Shown: positions 319 through 25,677, numbered from the stretch's first letter. The stretch is DNA of 64,000 bases from Blastocladiella emersonii ATCC 22665 (GCA_025594325.1 JANHCV010000007.1:496001-560000); one strand, 5' to 3'. Translations and numbers: made by a program. Notes: generated from the letters alone by a model not told the origin.

Positions 319-3300
319 TCAGTGCTCCGTCTGCGCGTGCTCCGCCGTCGCCCCGCTCGTCGTCGCAGTCGCCAGCACACTCGTCCCGACGACAGCGCCC
401 ACACGCGTCGGCGCAGGACTCCCTCCACCCCCGCCCGCATGTCCGCCGTACAGCCCCGCAAACGACTGTCCGCGGTTCGCGAGCGCGTACGCGAGCGCGT
501 CGGCCCACATGCCCGCGTCGGCGGGGGTCGCGGCCATCAGCTCGTACTGGTGGCCGTCCGTCAGCGCGATGGTGAAGGCCACGGTGGCGAGGTCGACGGG
601 CGCGTCGGTATCGGCGCCGGCGGCGGAGGAGGGTGAGGGGGGAGACGGAGGGGTGATCTTGGCCAGCTCGTCGATGCATAGCACGTTGCCAGTGTCCGAG
701 ACGTCCGCCTACACACACGCCGGGGTTAGCTTGACGTCGTTCTTGCGGATGCGGCATTCGTACCGAGTCGAGCGGCTCGAGCACGACCAGCCCCTGCTGC
801 GGGTACACGAGGAACCGCGCCGCCTTCCACGCCGCGCGCCACATGAGCCGCGCGGTGCGCGAGTGCCGGTAGCTGAGCACGCCCTCTTTCACGTACGCGA
901 GCGGCGGCGGGACTTTGGCGGGGGTGCTACCGGTGCTCTCGCTCGACTGCGTCATCGACGCCTTCCCACCGGCGCCCTTGGTCGAAGCGCCGCGGGTCTG
1001 CGAGTCCTCACCGCCAAACGAACCGCCCGTCCGCGCCTCGCTCCCACCCCCCGCGCGGCTCCCGCTGCGCTTCCCCGGCTCCGGCAACCCGCGGACCGTG
1101 CGGACGCCCGCGGCGACGAGCGGCGCGAGCAGCGTCGCGACGAGGGTCCCCGTGGCGAGCATCGTGCCCATGGCGAGGATCGCGTACTGGAGCGGCTGGC
1201 CGAGCGTGTTGAGGTAGACGAGCGGCGGCGCGACGAGCGCGATGAGGGCCAGGTTGTACGTGCAGAAACCGAGCCCTTTCGCCTCGGGGAACTGCGCCGC
1301 CGAGGCTTTGCGGGTTTTGACGGCCAGGTACAGCAGGAACGCGAGCTGTGCTCCCCCAAAAACGAACAGGATGGCGAGCATCGCGGTTTCGAATGCGGGG
1401 GATCGCGACGCGCACGCCGTGTATCGCGAAAGCGTCTGCGGCACGTCCGCGGGGACGCGCGGGTCGACGGCCGTCCAGACCGCGAGAACGGCGGCGGTGG
1501 TCCCGATGGACGCGGCGCGGAACATCATCCGCATGCGCGCGGGGACCGCGTTGATCGCGAGCCGCCGCGCGAGCGGGTTGCGGTGCAGCATGTACACGTG
1601 GAACAGGTTCATCCCCATGGCGTTGAACACGGTCGACGCCGCGAGCCCGGTCACCCACGGCTGCACGATGCACTGGAACGGCGTCGGCACACCGACGTAC
1701 ACCGCGGGCACAAAGTACGCGAGGAACGCGCCCGCCAGCATCTGCGCCGCGAGCGACGGGCACGACGACAGCGTGCGGCGCCACCGGGTCGGGTCCGACT
1801 TTGTGCGCAGGTGCGACGCGAGCGCGTAGAGCGCGAACAGGACGATGGTCAGCTGCCCGAGCGCCGCGAGGACCAGCATCACGAGCCCGACGGCGTCCGT
1901 CGCCTGCACGTTGGTCGGCAACCCCAGAAGGTCGATGGCCATGACCTGCGCGATCACCGAGTTGATGGTCGCTAGCATCTCCTCCTCGGTCACCTGCCCG
2001 CGGAGCATGTTCGCCCAGTTGGTGTAGATGGCCTGCGACACGTCGAGCCACTGTGTCCCGGCGACGGCCGAGGGCCGGGCTACGGGCTACACGCGAGGGG
2101 GCGGGGTTAGAGCGCTTGTAGCGGTGGTGATAGAGAGGGACGTACCTTGACTGCCTTGAAGATGTCACACCCGCCGACCGCCGCGCACACGGCCGCATCG
2201 TCCCACAGCCCCGTGAGCGACGGCAGCACGCCATGCGCGACGGCCCGTGCCGCCTGGACCTGCCGGCTCGCGAGCCACGCCGCCGCCAACAGCGTCGCCG
2301 CGCGGTCCGTCCCCGCCGGCGTCGTCGCGCTGCTGACCCCGACCATCATCCCGCCGACCATACTCACGCCCGCATCCGCCGCGACATTCCCCGGGATCGG
2401 CGCGCGCGCCCACGCGAAGCTCACGTTCCCCGCGGCGCGCGGCAGCCACGACCAGTGCCGCAGGTAGACCGCGTTGCCGCGCTGCCACTCGTCGAGCGAG
2501 GCCAGGTCGTCCGACACGATGGCGGGGGCCCCGATCACGCCCGACTTGATCCAACGGCGCGCGCGGCGCGCGGTCGCGAGGGCCGCGGGGTACAGAGGCG
2601 ATTTCGCGGTTGAGGAGAGAGTGCGGTTGGGTTCGAGGACCGAGCCCGCACGGTACGACGCCAGCCACTCGAGGGCCGCGGCGGTTAGGCCTTCGGCGGA
2701 GCGCAGCTGCGACATGTACCCGATCAGCGCCGGGTTCTTGACGCGTTCCGAGGGGAGGGTCGCGTTCAGCGCGCGCTCGATGTCGTCCCACTACATTCGC
2801 GCAACGGTGAGTGAAGGCGGCGGGAGAGGGTGAGAGGGGAGAGGCCGGACCGTCTTGGGCGCGTCAGCGAACCCGTACTTGGCGAGCAGCGAGGTCTGGT
2901 AGTACAGCACGCCGAGGTCGAGCGACACGGGCAGGCCGACCCTGTCCACCAACTCGTTAGCCCTCGCTCGCCTCCTCGCACCGCTGAAAAACGTACTGCG
3001 CCCCGTTAATCATCCCCGCGCCCAGCACCTGCGGGAGATGCCCCGCGAGCGTGCTGCCCGACAGCCCCTGGCTCAGGTTGTACAGCGACGGCGACAGCGC
3101 GCCGGCCCAGATCCCGTCAAACACGACCACGTCCGTCGCGTTGTTGAGCAGCGCGTTTTGCAGGTTCGAGAGGATGTCTACCCGAGGCGGTCGCGCGGTC
3201 AGCGACGCGTCACTCGCGTGTGTGTGTGTGTGGGTGGCCACGGACCCGTCGTCGTGAGGCCCGGATTCCACGTCAGCGCGAGATCGATGCCCGACGCCGC

Positions 3301-3582
3301 GGACCACGACGCGGCGAGCGGGCCGAGGACCGACTCTTCGTCCGTGATGTTGGTTGTCGTCGGGACTAGACGCGCGTCCGCGGGTCAGCGACGCGTGGAT
3401 GTCGAGGGGCCAGGACGACGTACGCGGCGTGATCAGGACGCGGACGGTTGGCCGACAAGCTGCGCTAGGACAAATCGGGCGAAGCTCAGTCGCCGAGAGC
3501 CGAGAAAGTGGCGGCGCATCGTACACGCGAGGCCCGCGAGGGCGGCGAGCAGCGCCAGCGCGCTCAGGTACAGGCGGTGCAT
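319..3582 (-). CDS. Multi-exon receptor: signal peptide + sugar solute-binding protein (TMBP-like) + class C GPCR 7TM + C-terminal PH domain (copy R1)
   Basis: Hand-spliced. Signal MHRLYLSALALLAALAGLA. SBP motifs LPVSLDLGVLYYQTSLLAKYGFADAPKT|WDD and AEGLTAAALEWLASY. 7tm_3-like motifs VGVPTPFQCIVQPW and AVKTRKASAAQFPEAKGLGFCTYNLALI. PH motifs VKEGVLSY...WKARRFLVY...FTIAL...YELMAATPADAGMWADAL. GT-AG introns with CTRAC branch sites restore the frame. Confidence 0.85.
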
Positions 3583-3728: not shown

Positions 3729-5291
3729 TCAATCCCGTGCAGCAGCCGCCCGCGATGGCGGCGGGACCAGCTCGCCCTTCTCGGCCGTCTCCCTCGCGCG
3801 CGCCTCGGTCCACCCGGTCGGTCCGGGCTCGTACCCGCGCTCGAGGCACGACATCACGAACGGCACGATCCGGTCCGTCTGCTTGGCGTCGACGAAGGCG
3901 CGGACCATCATCTCGACGGCGTAGTCGTGGAGGAACGGCGTCCCCGGGATCGTCGCGAACAGGTCCTCGATGCGCTGCACGAGCTCGCCGCGGGTCCGCT
4001 TCTTCCCACTCCGGTTCCCGCCGGCCTCGGCCGCCCAGTGCCGGATCAGCACCGCGTATGGCGAGTACTTGACGCGCGCGAACCCGAGAAACTCGGCGCA
4101 CCGGTCCGTGTACGCGGCCAGCGTCTCGAGCGCACCGCGCTCGTCGCCCGCCCGCAATAGCGCGTCCATCACGGCCTCGGCCGACATGCTGAAGAGCGGT
4201 TTCTGCGACAGGCGCATCTCGTGCGCGAGGTGCGCGCGCGCCGCGGCCAGGTCGTTGCGATGGATCGCCAGCTGTACGTGCACGTGGTGGCAGCTCGGCG
4301 TCAGCGGCACGCCGCGCGCGTCGAGCCGGTCGAGGACGGCCTGCGCCGCGTCGGCGTGCCCGTGCGCCAGCTCGGCGAGCGCCATGGTCGAGTACGCCTT
4401 GGCGAGCGCCGCGGGCTGGGTCTCGTTCGCAACAAACTCCTCGAACAGGGCGCGCGCGGCCGCGAGCCCCAGCGAACCGTCGGGGTCGGCGGGGTCGCCG
4501 CGTGCCTTGCGGTCGAGCGCGAGCGACGAGTGGATCTCGATCAGGATACGGTGCAGGACCCACGGGTGCGCCTGGATCACGGGCTGGTCGCGGAACGACT
4601 GCGCGACGTCGAGCGCCTCCTCGAACCGGCGCGTCTTCTTGTACGCATTGAGCACCGCCGCGAACACGGGCAGCCGCACGGGCTCCGCGCCCGGCGCCTT
4701 GGCGGCTTCCTGCACCACGTCCCACAGCCCGCGGGTCTCGGAGACCATCTTGCACTGCGCGGCGCGCACCAGCGTCAGCTCCAGCAGCGGCATCGGCGGG
4801 GCCGCGCCGCCCTCGAGGCCCGCCAGCCGGTCGAGGAGCGAGATCATGTGCACCACGTCGCCCCGGCTCGCCTGCCGCTGCCGCAGCGCATTGAATAAAG
4901 CGAGGCACACGTCGGACGTCACGTACTCAGGCGCGTGTGCCGAGAGCCACTCGTAGTCTGTCCACGCCGACCGCGTGCGACGCTTGCGGCAGTGCATCAG
5001 CAGCCGCTGCTCCACGGCGCGCGGGTCCGGCGACTCTGGGTGGCCGCGCTGCTCGTGGTGCCGCTGGTACACGTTGGACGGCGGCCGCGCGCGCGGGTCC
5101 TCGGGGTCGGTGTAGTAGCGGCTGTCGTTGTCCCGGCGGTACCGCGGGGCGCGCGAGGACAGGTGCCTTGTCGCGGCGGCGATGGGTGCCGCGACCGCGG
5201 CAGCGAGTGGCCGGGCCACGGCGATCCGGCTCGCCGTAACGACGGGTATGCGCGCAGTCCGCAGCGCGTGTAGCATCATCATTGTGTACAT
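3729..5291 (-). CDS. Mitochondrial pentatricopeptide-repeat (PPR) protein
   Basis: Intronless ORF of about 520 aa. Arg/Ala-rich, acid-free N-terminus (MLHALRTARIPVVTASR...RHLSS). PPR-like repeats such as AYSTMALAELAHGHADAAQAVLDRLDARGVPLT and VEMMVRAFVDAKQTDRIVPFVMSCLERGYEP. Start could be 5291 or 5282. Confidence 0.75.
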   Translation of the reverse strand: MYTMMMLHALRTARIPVVTASRIAVARPLAAAVAAPIAAATRHLSSRAPRYRRDNDSRYYTDPEDPRARPPSNVYQRHHEQRGHPESPDPRAVEQRLLMHCRKRRTRSAWTDYEWLSAHAPEYVTSDVCLALFNALRQRQASRGDVVHMISLLDRLAGLEGGAAPPMPLLELTLVRAAQCKMVSETRGLWDVVQEAAKAPGAEPVRLPVFAAVLNAYKKTRRFEEALDVAQSFRDQPVIQAHPWVLHRILIEIHSSLALDRKARGDPADPDGSLGLAAARALFEEFVANETQPAALAKAYSTMALAELAHGHADAAQAVLDRLDARGVPLTPSCHHVHVQLAIHRNDLAAARAHLAHEMRLSQKPLFSMSAEAVMDALLRAGDERGALETLAAYTDRCAEFLGFARVKYSPYAVLIRHWAAEAGGNRSGKKRTRGELVQRIEDLFATIPGTPFLHDYAVEMMVRAFVDAKQTDRIVPFVMSCLERGYEPGPTGWTEARARETAEKGELVPPPSRAAAARD

Positions 5292-5540
5292 GAAAGTCAA
5301 AGTGGAGAGCGGAGAGGGCGAGGTGGCGCGGGCAGGAATCGAACCCGGGCCGCGACCTGGGCGACAGGCTCGGCGGGCGCGTCACGTTGGCGCCGGCGCG
5401 AGGTGTGAGTGACGCGACGGCGGCGATCGGCGTTCGCTGAGCGGCGCTCCTCCCGCTTTCCGCTCCCGACGCGACCTGAGCCCTGCGAGCCGACCTCGCG
5501 CTTCTGCCTGCAACGCACCGACACCACACGCATCGACACC

Positions 5541-7112
5541 ATGTCCGACTTTGAGGATGACTTCATGGACGGTGGGTTGCCGCCCCCGCACCCAGACCGC
5601 GCGAGACGAGCGTGTGTGACTCACCCCACGACCCCGCACGCCCGCCACGCGTCCAGGTGATGAGGGAGATTTCGAGTACGAGGAGGACGATGACGAGGAG
5701 GAGGATGTCGATCTCGAGAACATTTACTACAGCGCCAAGGGTACGCGCTCACCGTGCGAGTGACCGCGGCGGCCGAGACTGACGCACACCCAACACGCGA
5801 AGCCGTCGTCGACGACGACAAGGACGCGGCGCTCGCCAAGTTCCAGGCCGTGGTCGACGGCGAGGTCGAGGAGGGCAAGTGGGCGTTCAAGGCCTTCAAG
5901 CAGATGTTCAAGCTGACGTTCCGCGCCGGCCGCCTCGCCGAGGCCCTGCAGTACTACCGCTCGGTGCTGCGCGTCGTGCCGACCGCCGTCACCCGCAACG
6001 AGTCGGAAAAGTCCATCAACAACATGCTCGACCTCGTGTCCGGCACGGGCGTCGGCACCGGGTGCCAGGACCTCGCCTTCCTCGAGCAGGTGTACAACGC
6101 GACGCTGGCGACGCTCGAGGCGCTGCGCAACGACCGGCTATGGCTCAAGTGCAACCTCAAGCTCGCCAAGCTGTACCTCGACCGCCGCGAGTACACGCGG
6201 CTCGCGCGCGTGCTCAAGCAGCTGCAGGCGTCGGTGCGGTCCGACGACGGGTCCGACGACCAGCGCAAGGGCACCCAGCAGCTCGAGATCCTCGCCCTCG
6301 AGATCCAAATGTACTCGGAGACCAAGAACAACAAGAAGCTCAAGGAGCTGTACCAGCAGTGCCTCAGCATCAAGTCGGCCATCCCCTCGCCCCGCATCAT
6401 GGGCATCATCCGCGAGTGCGGCGGCAAGATGCACATGGCCGAGGCCAACTGGAGCGAGGCCCAGTCCGCCTTCTTCGAGTCGTTCAAGAACTACGACGAC
6501 GCCGGCTCCTACCAGCGCATCCACGTCCTCAAGTACCTCGTGCTCGCCAACATGCTCGCCGAGTCCGAAATCGACCCGTTCGACTCGCAGGAGACCAAGC
6601 CCTACAAGTCGGACCCGGAGATCGCCGCCATGACCGACCTCGTCGCCGCCTACCACCGCCGCGACATTGCCGCCTTCGAGAAGATCCTCCGCACCAACCG
6701 CCGCTCCATCATGGACGACCCCTTCATCCGCGAGTACATTGACGAGGTCCTCCACACCATCCGCGCCCAGGTCATCGTCTCCCTCATCCAGCCCTACACC
6801 CGCATCGAGCTCGCCTTCATCGCCAACCAGCTCAACATCAGCATCGACGAGGTCGAGGCCCTCCTCGTCGCCCTCATCCTCGACAATAAAATCCACGGCA
6901 AGATCGACCAGACCCTCCAGCGCCTCGAGCTCTCGCACCGCACCGTCGTCGCGTCCTCGGCCACGATCGCCGCCCTCGGGCCCGCCGAGGCTGCCGCTGC
7001 CGCGATCGCCGCTCAGTCTGCTGCGTCCGAGTCGCTCTACGCCGTCACTAACCGCTGGTGCAACAACCTCAACACGCTGTCAGGCACCGTCGTCGGCAAG
7101 CTCAACCGCTAA
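5541..7112 (+). CDS. CSN2: COP9 signalosome subunit 2 (PCI domain)
   Basis: Two short 5' introns after MSDFEDDFMD. Diagnostic motifs DLENIYYSAK, WAFKAFKQ, AVTRNESEKSINNMLD, KGTQQLEILALEIQMY, IMGIIRECGGKMH, FFESFKNYDDAG, INPFDSQE-like IDPFDSQETKPYK. Confidence 0.95.
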
Positions 7113-7577: not shown

Positions 7578-8980
7578 ATGAAACGATTTATGTATGCTCT
7601 GCGCCTTATGTCTTTTGGCCGCGGTTCTGGCGCCGGTGGCCGTGGCCGCGGCCAACGACGCCGCGGCCGCGGACGGGCCCATCTGCATGATGTTATCGTG
7701 ACCATCATCGCTTTCGTCCTCACGGAGGCCATTGTGATCGCGTCGGCCGTCGCGCTAGTCCGGCAGAAGCGGTCACCGCTTGCGCGCCGCATGTCGTTCC
7801 GTCTGCTTCTGTCGGTTCTCGGCGGGCTCGCTGTGGCGGCCGTGTGGCCGCTGCTCTTCGTCGGCCAGCGCACTGGTACACAGTGCTTGCTTCAGGTCGT
7901 GATCCTCGCGCTCGCGTGGGCCGTGATCCTTGCATGCATGGCCGTCCAAGATCTGCGTTTTTATCTCATCGTCTCGAGCCCTTTACGCCGCGTCGCGAGC
8001 GACGTCACTCGGATGCTTCGCACTTTCATTCTCATCGTGGTTCTGGTGCAGCTTCTCGGCCTGCTGCTGTGGGGACTCGTGAGCCCGCCGTCTGCGGCCG
8101 TGTACGTCGTGGCCGACGAGTGGTAGTACCTGGCGTGTTCCGAGGGCACAACGCCAGAGCTCATCGCGATCCCGGCCTCGGTGGTCGCGGCGCTCGTCGC
8201 GCTCAACCTGTGGCTCGCGTACCGGTCCAAGGCTAGCGAGGTCGCCATGGCCAAGCGGCAGACGCCGACGCTGCGGATTCTTTACGCGATCTGCCTAATC
8301 GCGCTCGTTCAGGTACTTCCTGTTTGCTTGACTGTTAGCCACGACTAACAGCTGACCCGTGTTCGTGTTCGTGCACGTAGGCCGTCTGTCTCATGGTTCC
8401 TCAAATCACCCCGTCGACTCGCTCACTCGTCTTTGCCGTGACGACGCTCGTGCTCGTCGCGACCATCTGCAAGCTGTACGTGCTCCAGCAGCTGTACCCG
8501 GACTCGGAGGAGTCGTCGAGCGGCTGGATGGGCACGACGCGCGTCGGTATCCTCTCATCCTTCTCCTCGCAAGTCGCCTCTACTGCATCTAGCAACCGCG
8601 CACCGGGCTCGTTCCACCGCGACTTCTCGACGTCAAGCGACCGCACTTCGACTTCACTCACTACGGGTGACACGGCGGTGCACGTGGCCGCGTCGACCTT
8701 CCTCATCGAGCTGACGCCGTGCGTGCCGTGTCAGCCTCAGCTCTTCGTCGACCAGGCGGTGCTGATCGCGACCGAGATCTTGGGCAACCCGCAGTACCGC
8801 GCGGCAATCGCCCTGCGCTCGCTCACGGCTGTCGACTTTGTCCCGGGCTCGCAGACGTGTCTCCGCCTCCGGCTGCGCGGCCACGTCGTCGACATCGTCG
8901 GGTCTATGGCGACGACTGCGACGATAGCCCAGTGGAAGCACGTTCTTGGCGATTTTGTGCGCGAGGAACCGGGACAGTGA
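7578..8980 (+). pseudogene. Truncated paralog of the SBP-7TM-PH-like receptor (copy R2psi) with the SBP domain deleted
   Basis: 7TM and tail are highly similar to 10810-12094. The signal-peptide remnant (LCALCLL...AADGPI versus CSLCLV...AADRPI in R3) is joined directly and out of frame to TM1. There is an in-frame TAG at 8124-8126 where R3 has GAG. Confidence 0.85.
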
Positions 8981-9295
8981 CGCGGCCCGATGACAAGGAG
9001 TAGACCCATTTTTTTCCCTCCAACTCTGGTCGTACTCTGCGATCTGGGCGACGGGTACGCCACGGTCGGCCTCACGAAGGCGCAGCGCGGTGGCCGGTCG
9101 TTGCCGCCCCGCGTGGTGCGCGTCTTAAGCGGCACGTGCGGGTGAGCGACGCGTTTCACGCCCCGAACGCGTCTCTCGTCTCCCGGTGCCACCGTGCGAG
9201 ACGCCACGCGACTGGGGCCGGAAAAAGCGGAAACCGATGTCGCAGAGATCGGCTCGCGGCAACACGCTAATCTGTATTAAAACCCGCTGGCCACC

Positions 9296-12094
9296 ATGAG
9301 ACGCACTACGACACCATGCATTCGCCTTGTCAGCTGCTCCTTATGCCTAGTTGTCGTGGCCGTCGTGATTCTGTGCTCGGTCACCGGCGTCATGGCCGCC
9401 GACCGGCCTATCCGTCTGCTACTGCCATCGAACCGTGGGGTCGCAAAGCAATTTCAGGCCTACTTTGACGAATGGACCGTCGTGTCGGGGATCCAGGTGC
9501 AGGTCGACGTTCCGCGCGTGCAAGACGACCTGACCACGACCGAGTACTTCAGTCTGATCAAGGCCATGGAGGATCATAAGGTCGCCTACTACGATATCGT
9601 GTTCGTTGACGTCATCTGGCCGGCCCTGCTCACCAACGTCCTCGCGCCGCTCAACGGGCTCGTGAGTCCCGCCGCTATCGATGCGCAGGAGCAGAGCTTC
9701 GTCGACGCAGCGAGGATAGGCGGCAAGATCTACGCGCTCCCGTACACGGCGCCCATGTCGCTGCTCTACTACCGCGCCGACATTCTCGCTGACTACGGAT
9801 ACACTTCGGCGCCACGAACGGTACGGTTTTCTGCGCGGCGAGCGATGATTATATGGCCAACGCGCCATCGTGTAGTGGGACGAGATGGAGGCCATGCTTG
9901 ACCGCATCCTGCCGCGCGAGCAGGCGCGGCGACCCGGGCTACACGGATACATTGGTCAGCTCAAGGCGTACGAGGGCCTGACGTGCAATGCTGTCGAGTG
10001 GCTCGGCAGCTACGGCGCGGGCACCGCCGTCGAACTTGACGGGTCCATTTCCACGACGAACGTGACGCGCCGCGACGCGACCGTGGCCGCCATGACCCGG
10101 TTTCGAAGCTGGGTCACGCGCGGATTCATCCAGCCGTCGGTGCTTACCATGGCCGAGTCGCCCGCGTACGCGGCGTGGTTGTCGGGCAACGCGCTGTTTA
10201 TGCGCAACTGGGTACTGTCGAGTCTTGGCTAGTGACCGCAATGAGTCTGACGTCGACCTGCTCTCGTGTAGTTCGTTGGTTCATATCTGACGGGCCTCAA
10301 CTTCACGCCTGGCATTGCGCCGCTCCCCGGCAACACGCCCAATCTCGCCGGGTTTGCGACCAACGGCGCCAACTACTTTGGGATCAACCGGTTCACAGCC
10401 GACCCGATCCGCGCCGCCAAGGTCCTCGAGTTCATCACGGGCACCGAGTCGCAGCGCAAGTGGGCCACGACGCTCGGCCGCATCCCAACCATCAAGAGCT
10501 TACTCCAGGGTACGTAAGACGGCCGTGTCCCATCACGCACCGAGTAACCGAGTGTCCGCATGTAGACCAGTCCATCTGCAACGTCCTGGGCAACTGCAAC
10601 ATTAGCGGCAAGCTGCAGATCGTCGCCCGTCCCGCTCTCGCGACGGGCAAGTCGTACCTCACCGTGTCCGAGGCCATCTTTAGCGGGTGGAACCTCGCGC
10701 TCAGTGGGTACCTGACGCCCGCGGCCGCTGTGACGTGGCTCACGCGCCGGCTCGCGGCCATCCTATCGGTCGACATTCTCGGCCCGCCTCTCGTCGTCCA
10801 GTGGACCGACCCGGCCGGGATCGTGACCATCGTCGCGTTTGTCGTCTCCAAGGTCGTCATCATCGCGTCCACGATCGCGCTCGTGCGGCAGAAACGATCA
10901 GCGCTCGCGCGTCGCATGTCGTTCCGCCTCCTGCTCACCGTGCTCGCCGGCCTCGCCGTGACCGCCGTCTGGCCGCTGCTCTTCATCGGTCCGCGGACCG
11001 GGCTGCAGTGCTTTCTCCAGATCGCCATCCTCGCGCTCGCGTGGGCCGTGATCCTCGCGTCCATGGCCGTCCAGGACCTGCGAGTCTACCTGATCGTCTC
11101 AAGCCCGCTGCGCCGCGTCGCGAGCGACGTGACGCGAGTACTTCGCGTCTTCATTTTCGTCGTCATCTTGCTCCAGTGTCTCGGGCTGCTCCTGTGGGGG
11201 CTCGTCAGCCCGCCGTCGACGGCCATGTACGTCGTGGCCGACGAGTGGGAGTATCTCGCGTGCTCTGAGGGCACGACACCCGAACTCCTCGCGATCCCGG
11301 CCGCAGTCGTTGCGGCGCTCGTCACGCTCAACATGTGGCTCGCGTACCGCGCCAAGGCCAACGAGGTCGCCATGGCCAAGCAGCAGACGCCGACGCTCCG
11401 GATTCTCTACGTGATTTGCCTCGTCGCTCTCATCCTGGTACGGCCGCCTTTGCTAATCCACTGCTCTCTGTCGCTGACCCTCCCGCGCAAGTAGGCCGTT
11501 TGCCTCATGGTCCCTCAAATCACTCCGTCCGCGCGCTCGCTCATCTTTGCCGTGACCACGCTCGTACTCGTTGTGACCGTGTGCAAGATGTACGTGCTCG
11601 AGCAGTTGTACCCGGACTCGGAGGAGTCGACGACGGGCTGGATGGGCATGACGCGCGCGGGAACCGAGTCTTCACTCAGCACCGACATCGCCACGACCGC
11701 GTCGGGGAGTCGTCTCGGCTCCGCGCGCCGCGGCACGTCGTCGTCAATCGACCGCAAGTCCTCGTTTTCGATCACGACGCACGAGATGGCGCTGCGTACC
11801 GCCGCGTCGACGTTTCTCGTCGAGATCACGCCGTGTGTGCCGTGCCAGCTGCGCCTGTTCCTCGACCAGGCGGTGTTGATCGCGACCGAGATCTCGGGCA
11901 GCCCGCGGTACCGCGCGGCCATCGCGCTGCGTACGCTCACGGCCGTCGATTTCGTTACGCCGTCGCAGACGTGTTTGCGACTGCAGCTGCGCGGCCGCGT
12001 CGTGGATATCGTTGGGTCCGCGGCGACGAGTAGAGTGCTCGCGCAGTGGAAGCAGGTGCTGAGCGAGTTTGTGCGCGAGGATCCGGGACGGTGA
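9296..12094 (+). CDS. Multi-exon SBP(TMBP-like)-class C 7TM receptor with PH-like tail (copy R3)
   Basis: Signal peptide. DIVFVDVIWP, LPYTAPMSLLYYRADILADYGYTSAPRT|WDEM, YEGLTCNAVEWLGSYG, GNALFMRNW. Seven hydrophobic helices including FIGPRTGLQC and WEYLACSEG. Beta-rich tail ending VLAQWKQVL. Introns 9821-9875 and 10212-10271 checked. Confidence 0.85.
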
Positions 12095-22412: not shown

Positions 22413-25400
22413 ATGAAATCCTCAACTAGCTTACGGGGTTGGCCGTGGGTTTCGCTAGCGTTGGGGTTCCTCGTCGCCGCGCTGCTGCTTGCCGTCAGCC
22501 ATGTCGCACGGGCTCAAGTACGGCTCAGCTTGCAGCTTCGCCACGATGACTCTTTCTGATTCAGATAACTCGCTAGTCAGTGTATCCGAAAGTGCGGGTG
22601 AAAATGACCGCGCTGGACGACATTGCCAACGCGCCGCGCCTCGCCCGCGAGTATCAGGCACTCGCGGACGAGTGGTCCAAGACGTCCGGCATTGAACTCG
22701 AGATAACGTATCCGATTGGGGTACGGTATCGGTGCCTTGTGATATTCTCTCGGCAACTGACGTCCCGCGCAGACAATAGTCACGACCACGGACTACGTCG
22801 GCCTTCTTCACGCGGTCGCCGACCAGCAGAGCGCGTTTTGGGACATGTGCGCACATCAACGTCGACTCCGCATCTCGCTCGATCTAACCTCACAAACAGT
22901 TTCTACGTAGACGTGATCTGGCCGCCACTCTTCGCTGGTGACCTGCTTCTGCCACTGGATCCGTTCCTCGCGCCGTCGACGCTGTCCCAGTACTCGCCGG
23001 GCCTCCTCGAAGGCGGGTACGTTGACGGCAAGCTGTACGCGCTGCCCTACTCCAATGACATGGCCGTGCTGTACTACCGCACCGACCTGCTCGCCAAATA
23101 CGGGTTCTCGAACCCACCAACAACGGTACGACGTCTTCACCCCTGGCCGTGCTCGCATTTTACTAAGAGCGGCGCCGTGTAGTGGGATGAAATGGAAACC
23201 ATGCTGAATGTGATCCTGCCCGCTGAGCGACGCACCAACCCGAAGCTGCAGGGCTACGAGGTCCAGCTATCGCTGTACGAGGGCGCGACGTGCTCGGAGA
23301 TCGAGTTCATGGCGAGCGTCGGCGCCGGGTCCGTCATCGAGGCTGACGGCGTCATGTCCATTCTCGAACCCACAAAACGCGCCGCGACCGTCGACCTGAT
23401 GACGCGTTTCCGCGGGTGGATCGAGCGCGGGCTCATCTCGAACGAGGCGCTCACCGCCAACGAGGCCACGTCCATCAACCTGTGGAACGCGGGTAACGCC
23501 GTGTTCATGCGCAACTGGCTGGTCGGCACGTTCGTCCGCGAGAGCCCGTACCCGACGGCTGTCGCACCGCTGCCCGGCCTGCGGGCCGACCTCGCGGGCA
23601 TGTCGACGAACGGCGCCAACTTCATGGGCGTCAACCGGTTCACGACCAACCAGACGCGCGCCGTCCGAGCGCTCGAATTCTTGACGGGACCCGCGTCGCA
23701 GATCTACTGGGCGATGACGATGGGGAAAACGCCGACCATTCCGTCGCTGTTGAAGAGTGCGTGTTCATTCTCTTTCTCACGAGTTGTGCGACTAACGACT
23801 CTCGCGGTAGACCAAACGATCTGTGCGGGCCTCGGCAACTGCGACCTCGGCGACAAGCTCAAGGTGCGCGTTCCCCTCTCACGCTGACTTTGCTTGCTAA
23901 CACGCGTCGTATAGTTTGTTCCGCGGCCGTCGGCCGCCACGGGCACCATGTACCCGCGCGTCTCCGAGCTCATCTACACGGGGTGGAACTTCGCGCTGTC
24001 GAACAAGATGCCTCCCGATGCCGTGATCCACTCCATGACGCTCCAGCTCGGCCAACTGCTCAACTACAACATCTTCGGGAGCCCGCTCAACGTGCTCCCG
24101 CACGATCTTGGCGGGATTGTGACCATCGCGATCGTGACCGGCACCTCGCTCCTTGTGTTCGGGACCATGGCGTGGATCTCGGTGTACCAGGGCAAGGCCA
24201 AGGGCAAGCTCGGTGCGCGAGGCACACGCGCGAAGCCGGCGATGCACAGCCTGATCCTCCTGCTCGCGGGCGTCGAGCTGCTCGTGATCTGGCCGCTGAC
24301 GCTGCTCGGTCTGCGGACGACGGCGCAGTGCTGGTCGATCCTCGCGCTCCCTGTGCTCGGCATGACGCTGACGCTGCTCATCTTCGCCGCGCAGGACCTG
24401 CAGATCTACCTGATCGTGTTCAGCCGTCTGCGGCGGCTCGCGTCGGACGTGACACGGACCGTGCGCCAGTTCATCGCGGCCGTGCTGGTGATCCAGACCA
24501 CGGCGCTCGTCGTATGGGGCCTCGTGTCGGTCCCGAAACCGGGCATCGACGTGGTGCGCGACGAGTACACGATTGCCGTGTGCAACATGGGCCGGTACCC
24601 GGTCCTGCTCGCGATCCCGATCGTGATCCTCGTGCTCCTGCTCGCCGGGTGCGCGTGGCTCACGCGGCGCGCGCAGGAGGCCGTCGCGACGCGGCTCAGC
24701 TCGCCCGAGTCGGCGCCCGCGATGGTGTTTCTGTACTCGACCGTGGTCTTTGGCGTGCTGATCGTACTTTCGCTGTTTCATCATTGCCGCGTCGTCGGCT
24801 CACACCTTTTGTCGTGTAGGCGATCCCGCTGACACAAGAGCAGCAGCTGAGCCCGCTCGTCCGCGTCCTGTTCCTGGCCCTCTCGACGTCTATCTACGCG
24901 TGCATCGCGTCGCTGTACTATGTGCGCGGCCGCGTGAAGCCGAGCCTGCGCGGTCGCGGGAGCTCGCAGTGGATGGGCGCGACCATGGTCGATGCGGCCG
25001 ACGGCAGCGACGCCGCGGACTCGGACGCGACCGGCGCCACCGGCGCGGCGACACACGACTTTGAGCTCGGGACCAAGGGCCTCGACTCGTATATCACGGC
25101 GGACCGGCGCGCGAGCGGCAACGCCGGCCAATCGGCCTTCGCCCCAGCGCGCCGCCTGCCGCCCGCGCCCATCAACGCCGAGGTGGTCGCCAACTGGTGC
25201 GTGTCGACGACGGCGCTCAAGTTCCGGCTCGCCGAGTCGCGGTTCGTCCTCGACCTGATGCCGTGGACCAAGTGCCACCTGCGGTACATGAAGCACGAGC
25301 GGGTTCTGGTCGTCGTGGAAGTCCCCGGCGCGGGCCTGCGCCGCGCGCGCCGCGTGTTCCGGATCCGCCACCTCGCCGTCGTCCGCATCACGTCAAGACG

Positions 25401-25677
25401 GTCGAGTGCGCCGTGGGTGCTCCAGTTCGAGTTCGCGGGGCAGCTGCTCGAGGTGTCGGGCCCGCGCGCCGTCGTGTCGGAGTGGCTCATGGTGTTTGAC
25501 GCGTTCCGCGACCGCGAGGCCGAGCATCCGGCGGCCGTCCCGGATAGCGCGGCGCCGACGGCCGCAGCAGCGGCGGGGCATCCGGGCGCGACGCTCGGGC
25601 TCACGCTCGCGCGCGGCGACTCGGATGGGCAGTTCGGGATGAGCATGGCGCGCTCGGCGTCGGACGGGCCGCTGTGA
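22413..25677 (+). CDS. Multi-exon SBP(TMBP-like)-class C 7TM receptor with PH-like tail (copy R4)
   Basis: Signal MKSSTSLRGWPWVSLALGFLVAALLLAV. VDVIWP, LPYSNDMAVLYYRTDLLAKYGFSNPPTT|WDEM, YEGATCSEIEF, GNAVFMRNW. 7TM including LGLRTTAQCW. Tail RFVLDL...RVLVVVE...VLQFEF...LLEVSG...VSEWLMVF. Confidence 0.85.

Follow-up and report, generated by a model that had tools for sequence, protein, structure and literature searches.

A diverged PH domain predicted on the cytoplasmic tail of G-protein-coupled receptors of class C from zoosporic fungi

Class C GPCRs (G-protein-coupled receptors) belong to the best studied receptors, and the role known for their tails is that of a peptide platform rather than of a carrier for folded signalling domains. 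A stretch of 64,000 nucleotides from Blastocladiella emersonii ATCC 22665 (JANHCV010000007.1:496001-560000; hereafter the window), a water mould-like fungus, raises the question of whether such receptors can bear a folded domain of their own. The window is eukaryotic in character, with a GC content of 56-73% and short GT..AG introns, and it encodes four receptor sequences: R1, R2psi, R3 and R4. A first-pass annotation of this DNA proposed a single-chain receptor in which a solute-binding protein (SBP) ectodomain, a seven-transmembrane (7TM) core and a PH domain follow one another, with the PH as a possible built-in effector, localisation or feedback module. This architecture is borne out for R1 by an open exon, by a matching deposited gene model and by the predicted fold. 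R1 is very probably a class C GPCR-like receptor of the SBP-7tm_3-PH type, with R3 carrying a homologous PH-fold tail, R4 and R2psi joining the family by profile, and the 7TM-PH unit constant in two fungal phyla.

The R1 gene and its parts are laid out as follows, with the transmembrane helices numbered TM1-7 and secondary structure elements (E, strand; H, helix) taken from an AlphaFold2 (AF2) model of the tail.

3582..319, minus strand: R1 gene (H9P43_006120, KAI9175756.1, here P0001), 948 residues, ATG at 3582, stop at 321..319; deposited as "hypothetical protein"
2107..3582 (approximate), minus strand, several exons: signal peptide and sugar-type SBP ectodomain (Pfam SBP_bac_8, 3.3e-13, P0001 67-362)
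1130..1903, minus strand: class C 7TM core (7tm_3), one exon, seven helices (PF00003, 84.4-86.8 bits against a cut-off of 33.5, P0001 440-697)
896..1129, minus strand: Gly/Ser-rich linker from TM7 to the PH domain, ∼75 residues (P0001 698-776, without Pfam match)
764..895, minus strand: predicted first half of the PH domain (beta1-beta3), in the exon of the 7TM core (AF2 E7-16, E28-35, E40-45)
763..709, minus strand: intron within the PH domain, 55 nucleotides, phase 0, GTACGA...CTAAC...TAG, from sequence reading, with CTAAC as branch site
478..708, minus strand: predicted second half of the PH domain, comprising beta4-beta5, a Pro/Ser-rich insert loop, beta6-beta7 and a C-terminal Trp helix (AF2 E56-59, E63-67, E92-97, E102-106, H110-125)
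322..477, minus strand: Gly/Ala/Thr-rich end beyond the PH domain, 52 residues (P0001 897-948)

Homology places the ectodomain of R1 among sugar-binding proteins. Its closest relatives in the PDB (phmmer) are sugar ABC binding proteins, namely the 6j9w series (1e-31), MalE3 (9e-18) and a trehalose/maltose-binding protein (1e-12), so "sugar-type" appears a fair label by homology. The ligand domain belongs to SBP_bac_8/SBP_bac_1 (type II), not to ANF (type I), and R1 thus has the periplasmic-binding-protein-like domain that characterizes class C GPCRs. The nine-cysteine domain NCD3G, a class C feature placed between ectodomain and 7TM, gave no match in any Pfam scan of these receptors; it is also lacking in GABA-B receptors and in gut-fungal receptors.

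Genomic structure ties the tail of R1 to its receptor core. A single open exon of 441 codons (764-2086, minus strand) encodes TM1-7, the linker and PH strands beta1-beta3, and its translation is 100% identical to the deposited protein, whose called gene (L001, 10001-13264) corresponds to 3582..319 of the window. Because the first half of the PH domain shares this exon with TM1-7, the fusion of receptor and tail is independent of any splice. The deposited model uses exactly the intron at 763..709, joining ...EPLDS to ADVSD.... Given a signal peptide and an ectodomain that faces out, the tail is cytoplasmic. The ∼75-residue Gly/Ser linker is disordered, and the PH domain proper occupies ∼478-895; the span of 319-960 first assigned to it does contain the domain, together with part of the linker and the low-complexity end of 52 residues. 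Kinase, cyclase and phosphatase domains gave no Pfam match in R1, and the sole folded C-terminal domain is the non-catalytic PH.

Structural modeling and profile comparison converge on the PH fold. An alignment of the tails of 25 relatives (A2) served as the basis of both the R1 family profile and the R1 AF2 model, the folded segment excluding the 52-residue end (P0001 897-948). The model (predicted local distance difference test, pLDDT, 87.8; predicted template modelling score, pTM, 0.76) shows seven strands and a C-terminal helix, with low confidence for the Pro/Ser insert between strands 5 and 6. In a Foldseek search of the PDB, all of the top 50 matches were PH domains (50/50, probability 1.00), and lipid-bound PH domains were among the top structural matches (pleckstrin C-PH, DAPP1, TAPP1, ARAP3, ASAP1). 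VIA-align superposes the model on the pleckstrin C-terminal PH domain with a Z score of 13.2 (root-mean-square deviation 2.6 Å, 94 residues, 22% identity) and on the GRK2 PH domain with a Z score of 13.1. At the sequence level, the A2 family profile matched PH domains in 40 of 44 cases against all PDB sequences (E<=10), led by FARP2 (1.6e-4) and SBF1 (3.1e-4), followed by myosin X and pleckstrin, and Pfam PH was matched by 10 of the 25 isolated tails (best 6e-6). The Trp of the C-terminal helix (P0001 W887) is kept in all 51 aligned tails and is also found in R2psi, R3 and R4. PTB, EVH1 and FERM-F3 domains, considered in place of PH, tie with it in Z score, yet the sequence-level matches are all to true PH domains, and these candidates were rejected. 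The modeled fold, together with the profile matches, confirms the R1 tail as a true but very diverged PH domain, far beyond chance.

The degree of divergence is visible in the motifs themselves. The strings by which the tail had been recognized are present on the minus strand of R1 (KEGVL starting at 889, YELMA at 546, MWADAL at 510), as are the Trp-containing tail ends of the other receptors on the plus strand (IAQWKHVL at 8924, LAQWKQVL at 12038, VSEWLMVF at 25474). One string had been misquoted: the sequence reads WKAARF, not WKARRF, a difference of consequence, since Ala takes the place in R1 of the Arg that canonically binds ligand on beta2. The description of R1 as a textbook PH pattern was overstated; the model has the PH fold, but Pfam finds no PH domain at E<=1 and the phosphoinositide motif is incomplete. 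Pfam scans of the separate exon pieces of all four tails likewise gave no match, the domain being visible only at the level of the family profile or the fold.

The first-pass annotation saw a PH pattern in R1 and highly diverged, beta-rich tails in the other three receptors; predicted structures show a PH fold for R1 and R3, and profile matches extend the family to R4 (strong) and R2psi (weak). The corresponding features are listed below.

11762..12091, plus strand: R3 PH-like tail domain, from AF2, Foldseek and hhalign
11438..11494, plus strand: R3 intron directly before TM7, 57 nucleotides, phase 0, from sequence reading; TM7 lies in the tail exon
25186..25527, plus strand: R4 PH-like tail domain, from a profile match, aligned in A4 (see below)
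24764..24819, plus strand: R4 intron directly before TM7, 56 nucleotides, phase 0, from sequence reading and reading frames
8651..8977, plus strand: R2psi PH-like tail, 72% protein identity to the R3 tail (A4)

The R3 tail was modeled from a separate alignment (A4) of eight R3-type sequences only, so that its fold test stays independent of the R1-type tails. The resulting AF2 model (pLDDT 88.9, pTM 0.81) has the same order of elements as R1, and its Foldseek matches are PH or PH-like domains (ISP3, ASAP1, GRK2, DAPP1, Dbs). Profile-profile comparison with hhalign aligns R3-type with R1-type tails over 107 columns (probability 96%, E 4.3e-9). The R3-type profile alone gave nothing significant against the PDB, the best match being spectrin beta (E 0.27). 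As modeled, the R3 tail carries a PH fold homologous to that of the R1 tail.

The three tails other than that of R1 were scored, in bits, against a profile confined to R1-type tails, with 2000 shuffles as control.

R4 tail: 27.2 bits, reached by 0 of 2000 shuffles
R3 tail: 10.8 bits, reached by 0 of 2000 shuffles
R2psi tail: 7.7 bits, reached by 1 of 2000 shuffles

On this profile evidence the R4 tail is a strong candidate member of the PH family and the R2psi tail a weak one. The single-chain proposal also presupposed that the last exon is spliced to the 7TM exons, and this holds: in R1 the fusion lies within one exon, and in R3 and R4 the tail exons carry TM7 and must therefore be spliced to the 7TM exons. 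The upstream R3 exon, without TM7, matches 7tm_3 with 55.2 bits and reaches only position 216 of the 251 in the profile; the tail exon is thus needed for a complete receptor. Both R3 exons are colinear with one Catenaria protein (P0029, 367-644 and 659-864), and the annotated gene ends at the R3 stop (12094).

The 7TM-PH unit extends well beyond the window. A set of 153 proteins was fetched, made up of the 150 best matches to the R1 7TM exon in a single search and a few additional cluster members; within this set, a locally iterated hidden Markov model located 54 proteins with a PH tail following the 7TM core. The named tail carriers are all zoosporic fungi and represent at least 12 species in two phyla.

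Blastocladiomycota: Blastocladiella emersonii, B. britannica, three Allomyces species, Catenaria, Paraphysoderma, Sorochytrium
Chytridiomycota: two Phlyctochytrium species, Dinochytrium, Fimicolochytrium, Gaertneriomyces, Spizellomyces

Across these proteins the ectodomain is SBP, ANF_receptor or EGF-type and the tail is constant. The tail had first been taken as a feature of sugar-sensing receptors; that restriction does not hold, as it is also present on ANF- and EGF-type receptors, and receptors with these ectodomains give Pfam PH scores of 15 to 24.2 bits. Whatever their ectodomain, class C receptors of Blastocladiomycota and Chytridiomycota have the 7TM-PH combination as a constant module. 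None of the 30 full-length proteins scanned reached the Pfam PH (PF00169) cut-off of 25.1 bits (best 24.2), and Pfam-based architecture surveys would therefore not list 7tm_3 with PH. Database homologue searches with P0001 772-900 and with a full-length alignment (A3) returned the query only, as word seeding fails on this diverged, low-complexity-rich family.

Several observations weigh against this reading. R1 itself has no Pfam PH match at E<=1, and the fold models were built on alignments of 25 (R1) and 8 (R3) sequences. The phosphoinositide motif K-Xn-(K/R)-X-R is broken in R1 by sequence register, with Tyr for the Lys of beta1 and Ala for the Arg of beta2. The R3 and R2psi tails are without a basic patch, with net charges of -1 and -3. 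Finally, the true spread of the tail and its absence outside fungi are not set by the sample of 153 proteins.

The combination of a class C receptor with a PH tail is apparently undescribed as a lineage-wide layout and is left unannotated by Pfam. No GPCR with a fused PH domain was found in the literature searched, the coverage of which was partial. This agrees in part with the first impression that the architecture was new, although the proteins themselves, from at least 12 species, already sit unannotated in public proteomes. Earlier work has described class C (Glutamate-family) GPCRs of fungi whose ectodomains are non-canonical (Krishnan 2012, PMC3251606; de Mendoza 2014, PMC3971589; Seppala 2016, PMC5168858), with bacterial type II sugar-binding, ANF, OpuAC and EGF/beta-helix ectodomains and an expansion of the family in Allomyces, chytrids and gut fungi. 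The receptors presented here share with them the receptor family, the 7tm_3 core and the ectodomain types. However, those studies analysed the N-terminal domains only and mention neither PH domain nor pleckstrin, and the two of them examined for it do not use the word "C-terminal" either; the conserved PH tail is the addition made here.

Other known systems share single features with this layout. The GPCR-bigrams of oomycetes and Dictyostelium RpkA (van den Hoogen 2018, PMC6033456; PMC5784254) likewise couple a 7TM domain to a cytoplasmic C-terminal signalling domain in a lineage-wide manner. Unlike these bigrams, in which a catalytic accessory domain (PIPK, INPP, AC, PDE or TKL) sits on a non-class-C 7TM domain, the present receptors combine a class C core with a PH that is non-catalytic; the bigram types listed in those two papers do not include PH, and neither paper contains a receptor-linked PH, and R1 is without the C-terminal catalytic domain that defines a bigram. 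The C-terminal PH domains of GRK2 and GRK3 offer a second parallel, as a PH fold that acts beside an activated GPCR and ranks among the best structural matches (Z 13.1). There, the PH is part of a separate kinase and binds G-beta-gamma and PIP2, whereas here it belongs to the receptor chain, at 14-19% identity. The EVH1 domain of Homer has a PH-like fold. In the pairs mGluR1/5-Homer EVH1 and GPR158-RGS7-G-beta-5 (PMC8611064), an animal class C tail similarly acts as a docking platform, but with the peptide on the receptor and the folded domain on the partner; the fungal receptors have the folded PH on the receptor.

What the tail does can be approached through its surface. Although the motif positions are altered, R14 and R31, which neighbour them in R1, are basic; R3-type tails are without these basic residues. 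Summed over its first 36 residues, the R1 tail has a net charge of +6, and R1-type relatives range from +1 to +6. Since the R3 and R2psi tails are neutral to acidic at beta1-beta2, a lipid role or specific phosphoinositide sensing cannot be the function common to all tails. A turn motif at the end of beta1 (Arg-any-Ala/Gly-Lys/Arg-Ser/Thr; P0001 785-789, window about 854-868, minus strand) comprises R14, a basic residue at 17 and Ser/Thr at 18; of 29 tails that align at this site, 24 retain the Arg and 26 the Ser/Thr. The motif could serve as a phosphate contact or a phosphorylation site, and the R1-type basic region and turn motif together would suit contact with acidic lipids or a phosphorylated partner. 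Judged from these residues, a specific phosphoinositide sensor of the canonical kind appears an unlikely role for the tail.

Docking, whether to a membrane or to another protein, is what PH domains do for the proteins that bear them. We tentatively favor, at slightly less than an even chance, a receptor-borne PH that is tethered and works as a docking module on the membrane's inner face. Such a module would hold the R1-type tail, with its basic beta1-beta2 face, against acidic lipids, and a protein from the G-protein pathway may be a further partner; in either case, the tethered PH would set the location and duration of receptor signalling.

Alternative roles differ mainly in the partner they assign to the domain. 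A built-in G-beta-gamma binding module resembling the GRK2 PH, which would serve as a scaffold or a brake by trapping released G-beta-gamma on the activated receptor, is unlikely. Both models have the GRK2 PH near the top of their structural matches (R1, Z 13.1; R3, ranks 3, 7 and 9 at 17-19% identity), and R1-type and R3-type tails alike would suit a protein partner. Fungi are missing from the groups for which GRK-like proteins are listed, namely Holozoa, Dictyostelida, Heterokonta and Haptophyta (de Mendoza 2014, PMC3971589), a gap that a receptor-borne PH could fill. However, GRK2 is tied with dozens of PH, PTB and FERM-F3 domains within one Z unit, and the match therefore shows fold, not function. 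A canonical PIP2/PIP3 sensor, tying the activity or position of the receptor to PI3K-type polarity signals in the swimming zoospore, is quite improbable: lipid-bound PH domains among the top structural matches and the basic beta1-beta2 region of R1-type tails (+6 in R1) speak for it, but R1 departs from the canonical motif by sequence register, R3 and R2psi are neutral to acidic at beta1-beta2, and tight, specific phosphoinositide binding is known for only a minority of PH domains. To a role within the receptor itself, either as a plug that would autoinhibit the 7TM core from its cytoplasmic face or as a dimer contact like the GABA-B tails, we assign a similarly low probability. Class C receptors work as dimers whose tails often mediate pairing, and the retention of the tail with the 7TM core while ectodomains change suits co-evolution with that core; the long flexible linker would permit folding back.

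The most far-reaching proposal, which is fairly unlikely, makes the receptor-borne PH a transducing or desensitising element of an undescribed class C signalling mode of zoosporic fungi. Its target, recognized directly at the receptor, would be G-beta-gamma or else a lipid produced upon activation; the element would take the place of the GRK-type machinery that de Mendoza 2014 does not list in fungi, and would predate the split between Blastocladiomycota and Chytridiomycota. At the other extreme, the PH assignment might be an artefact, either a chance pattern or a gene model that joins a separate downstream gene. The missing Pfam PH match of R1 and the faulty models of neighbouring genes, with R2psi and R3 merged and a paralogue (P0149) truncated by intron read-through, lend it some color, but its probability is negligible given two independent confident PH-fold models and a tail that follows the 7TM core across two phyla, in no fewer than 12 species. 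The gene-model version is rejected outright, as half of the PH domain lies in the exon of TM1-7. Against these alternatives, the tethered docking module stays the favored, if tentative, role.

A PH domain kept on dozens of receptors in two early-diverging fungal phyla points to a wiring of receptor output that animals do not use. The tail offers a testable handle on sugar and amino-acid sensing by swimming fungal spores, in a zoosporic group that includes relatives of the amphibian pathogen Batrachochytrium. The succession of ligand domain, 7TM core and docking domain is also a compact natural design for biosensor engineering. More generally, Pfam-based surveys of GPCR architecture under-report C-terminal domains.

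R2psi (7695-8980, plus strand) is a partial tandem copy of R3 (10820-12094) with 77% DNA identity. It is without an ectodomain and contains an in-frame TAG at 8124-8126. An intron lies at the matching pre-TM7 site, at about 8313-8380. The deposited annotation has a single gene of 1074 residues across 7791-12094 and thus seems to merge R2psi sequence with R3.

The short intron before TM7 is common to R2psi, R3 and R4, whereas R1 has TM7 in its main exon and an intron inside the PH domain; these differing intron positions set two receptor subfamilies apart. Shortly beyond TM7, the Ser/Thr-rich linkers of R3 (about 11600-11640), R2psi (about 8500-8540) and R4 (about 24960-24990), all on the plus strand, have a short Trp-Met-Gly motif that is lacking in R1.

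A further paralogue, P0149 (KAI9168405.1, H9P43_007777, 635 residues), is encoded on another contig and shares 79% identity with the R3 7TM exon. The end of its model resembles read-through of the pre-TM7 intron. P0149 probably is without TM7 and PH tail through a gene-model error, and the deposited proteome may therefore under-report PH tails.

Two other genes lie between R1 and R2psi: a PCI-domain gene (5542-7112, plus strand; 474 residues, PF01399) and a gene of 517 residues without Pfam match (3729-5300, minus strand). With these genes intervening, the receptors form a loose cluster, not a strict tandem array.

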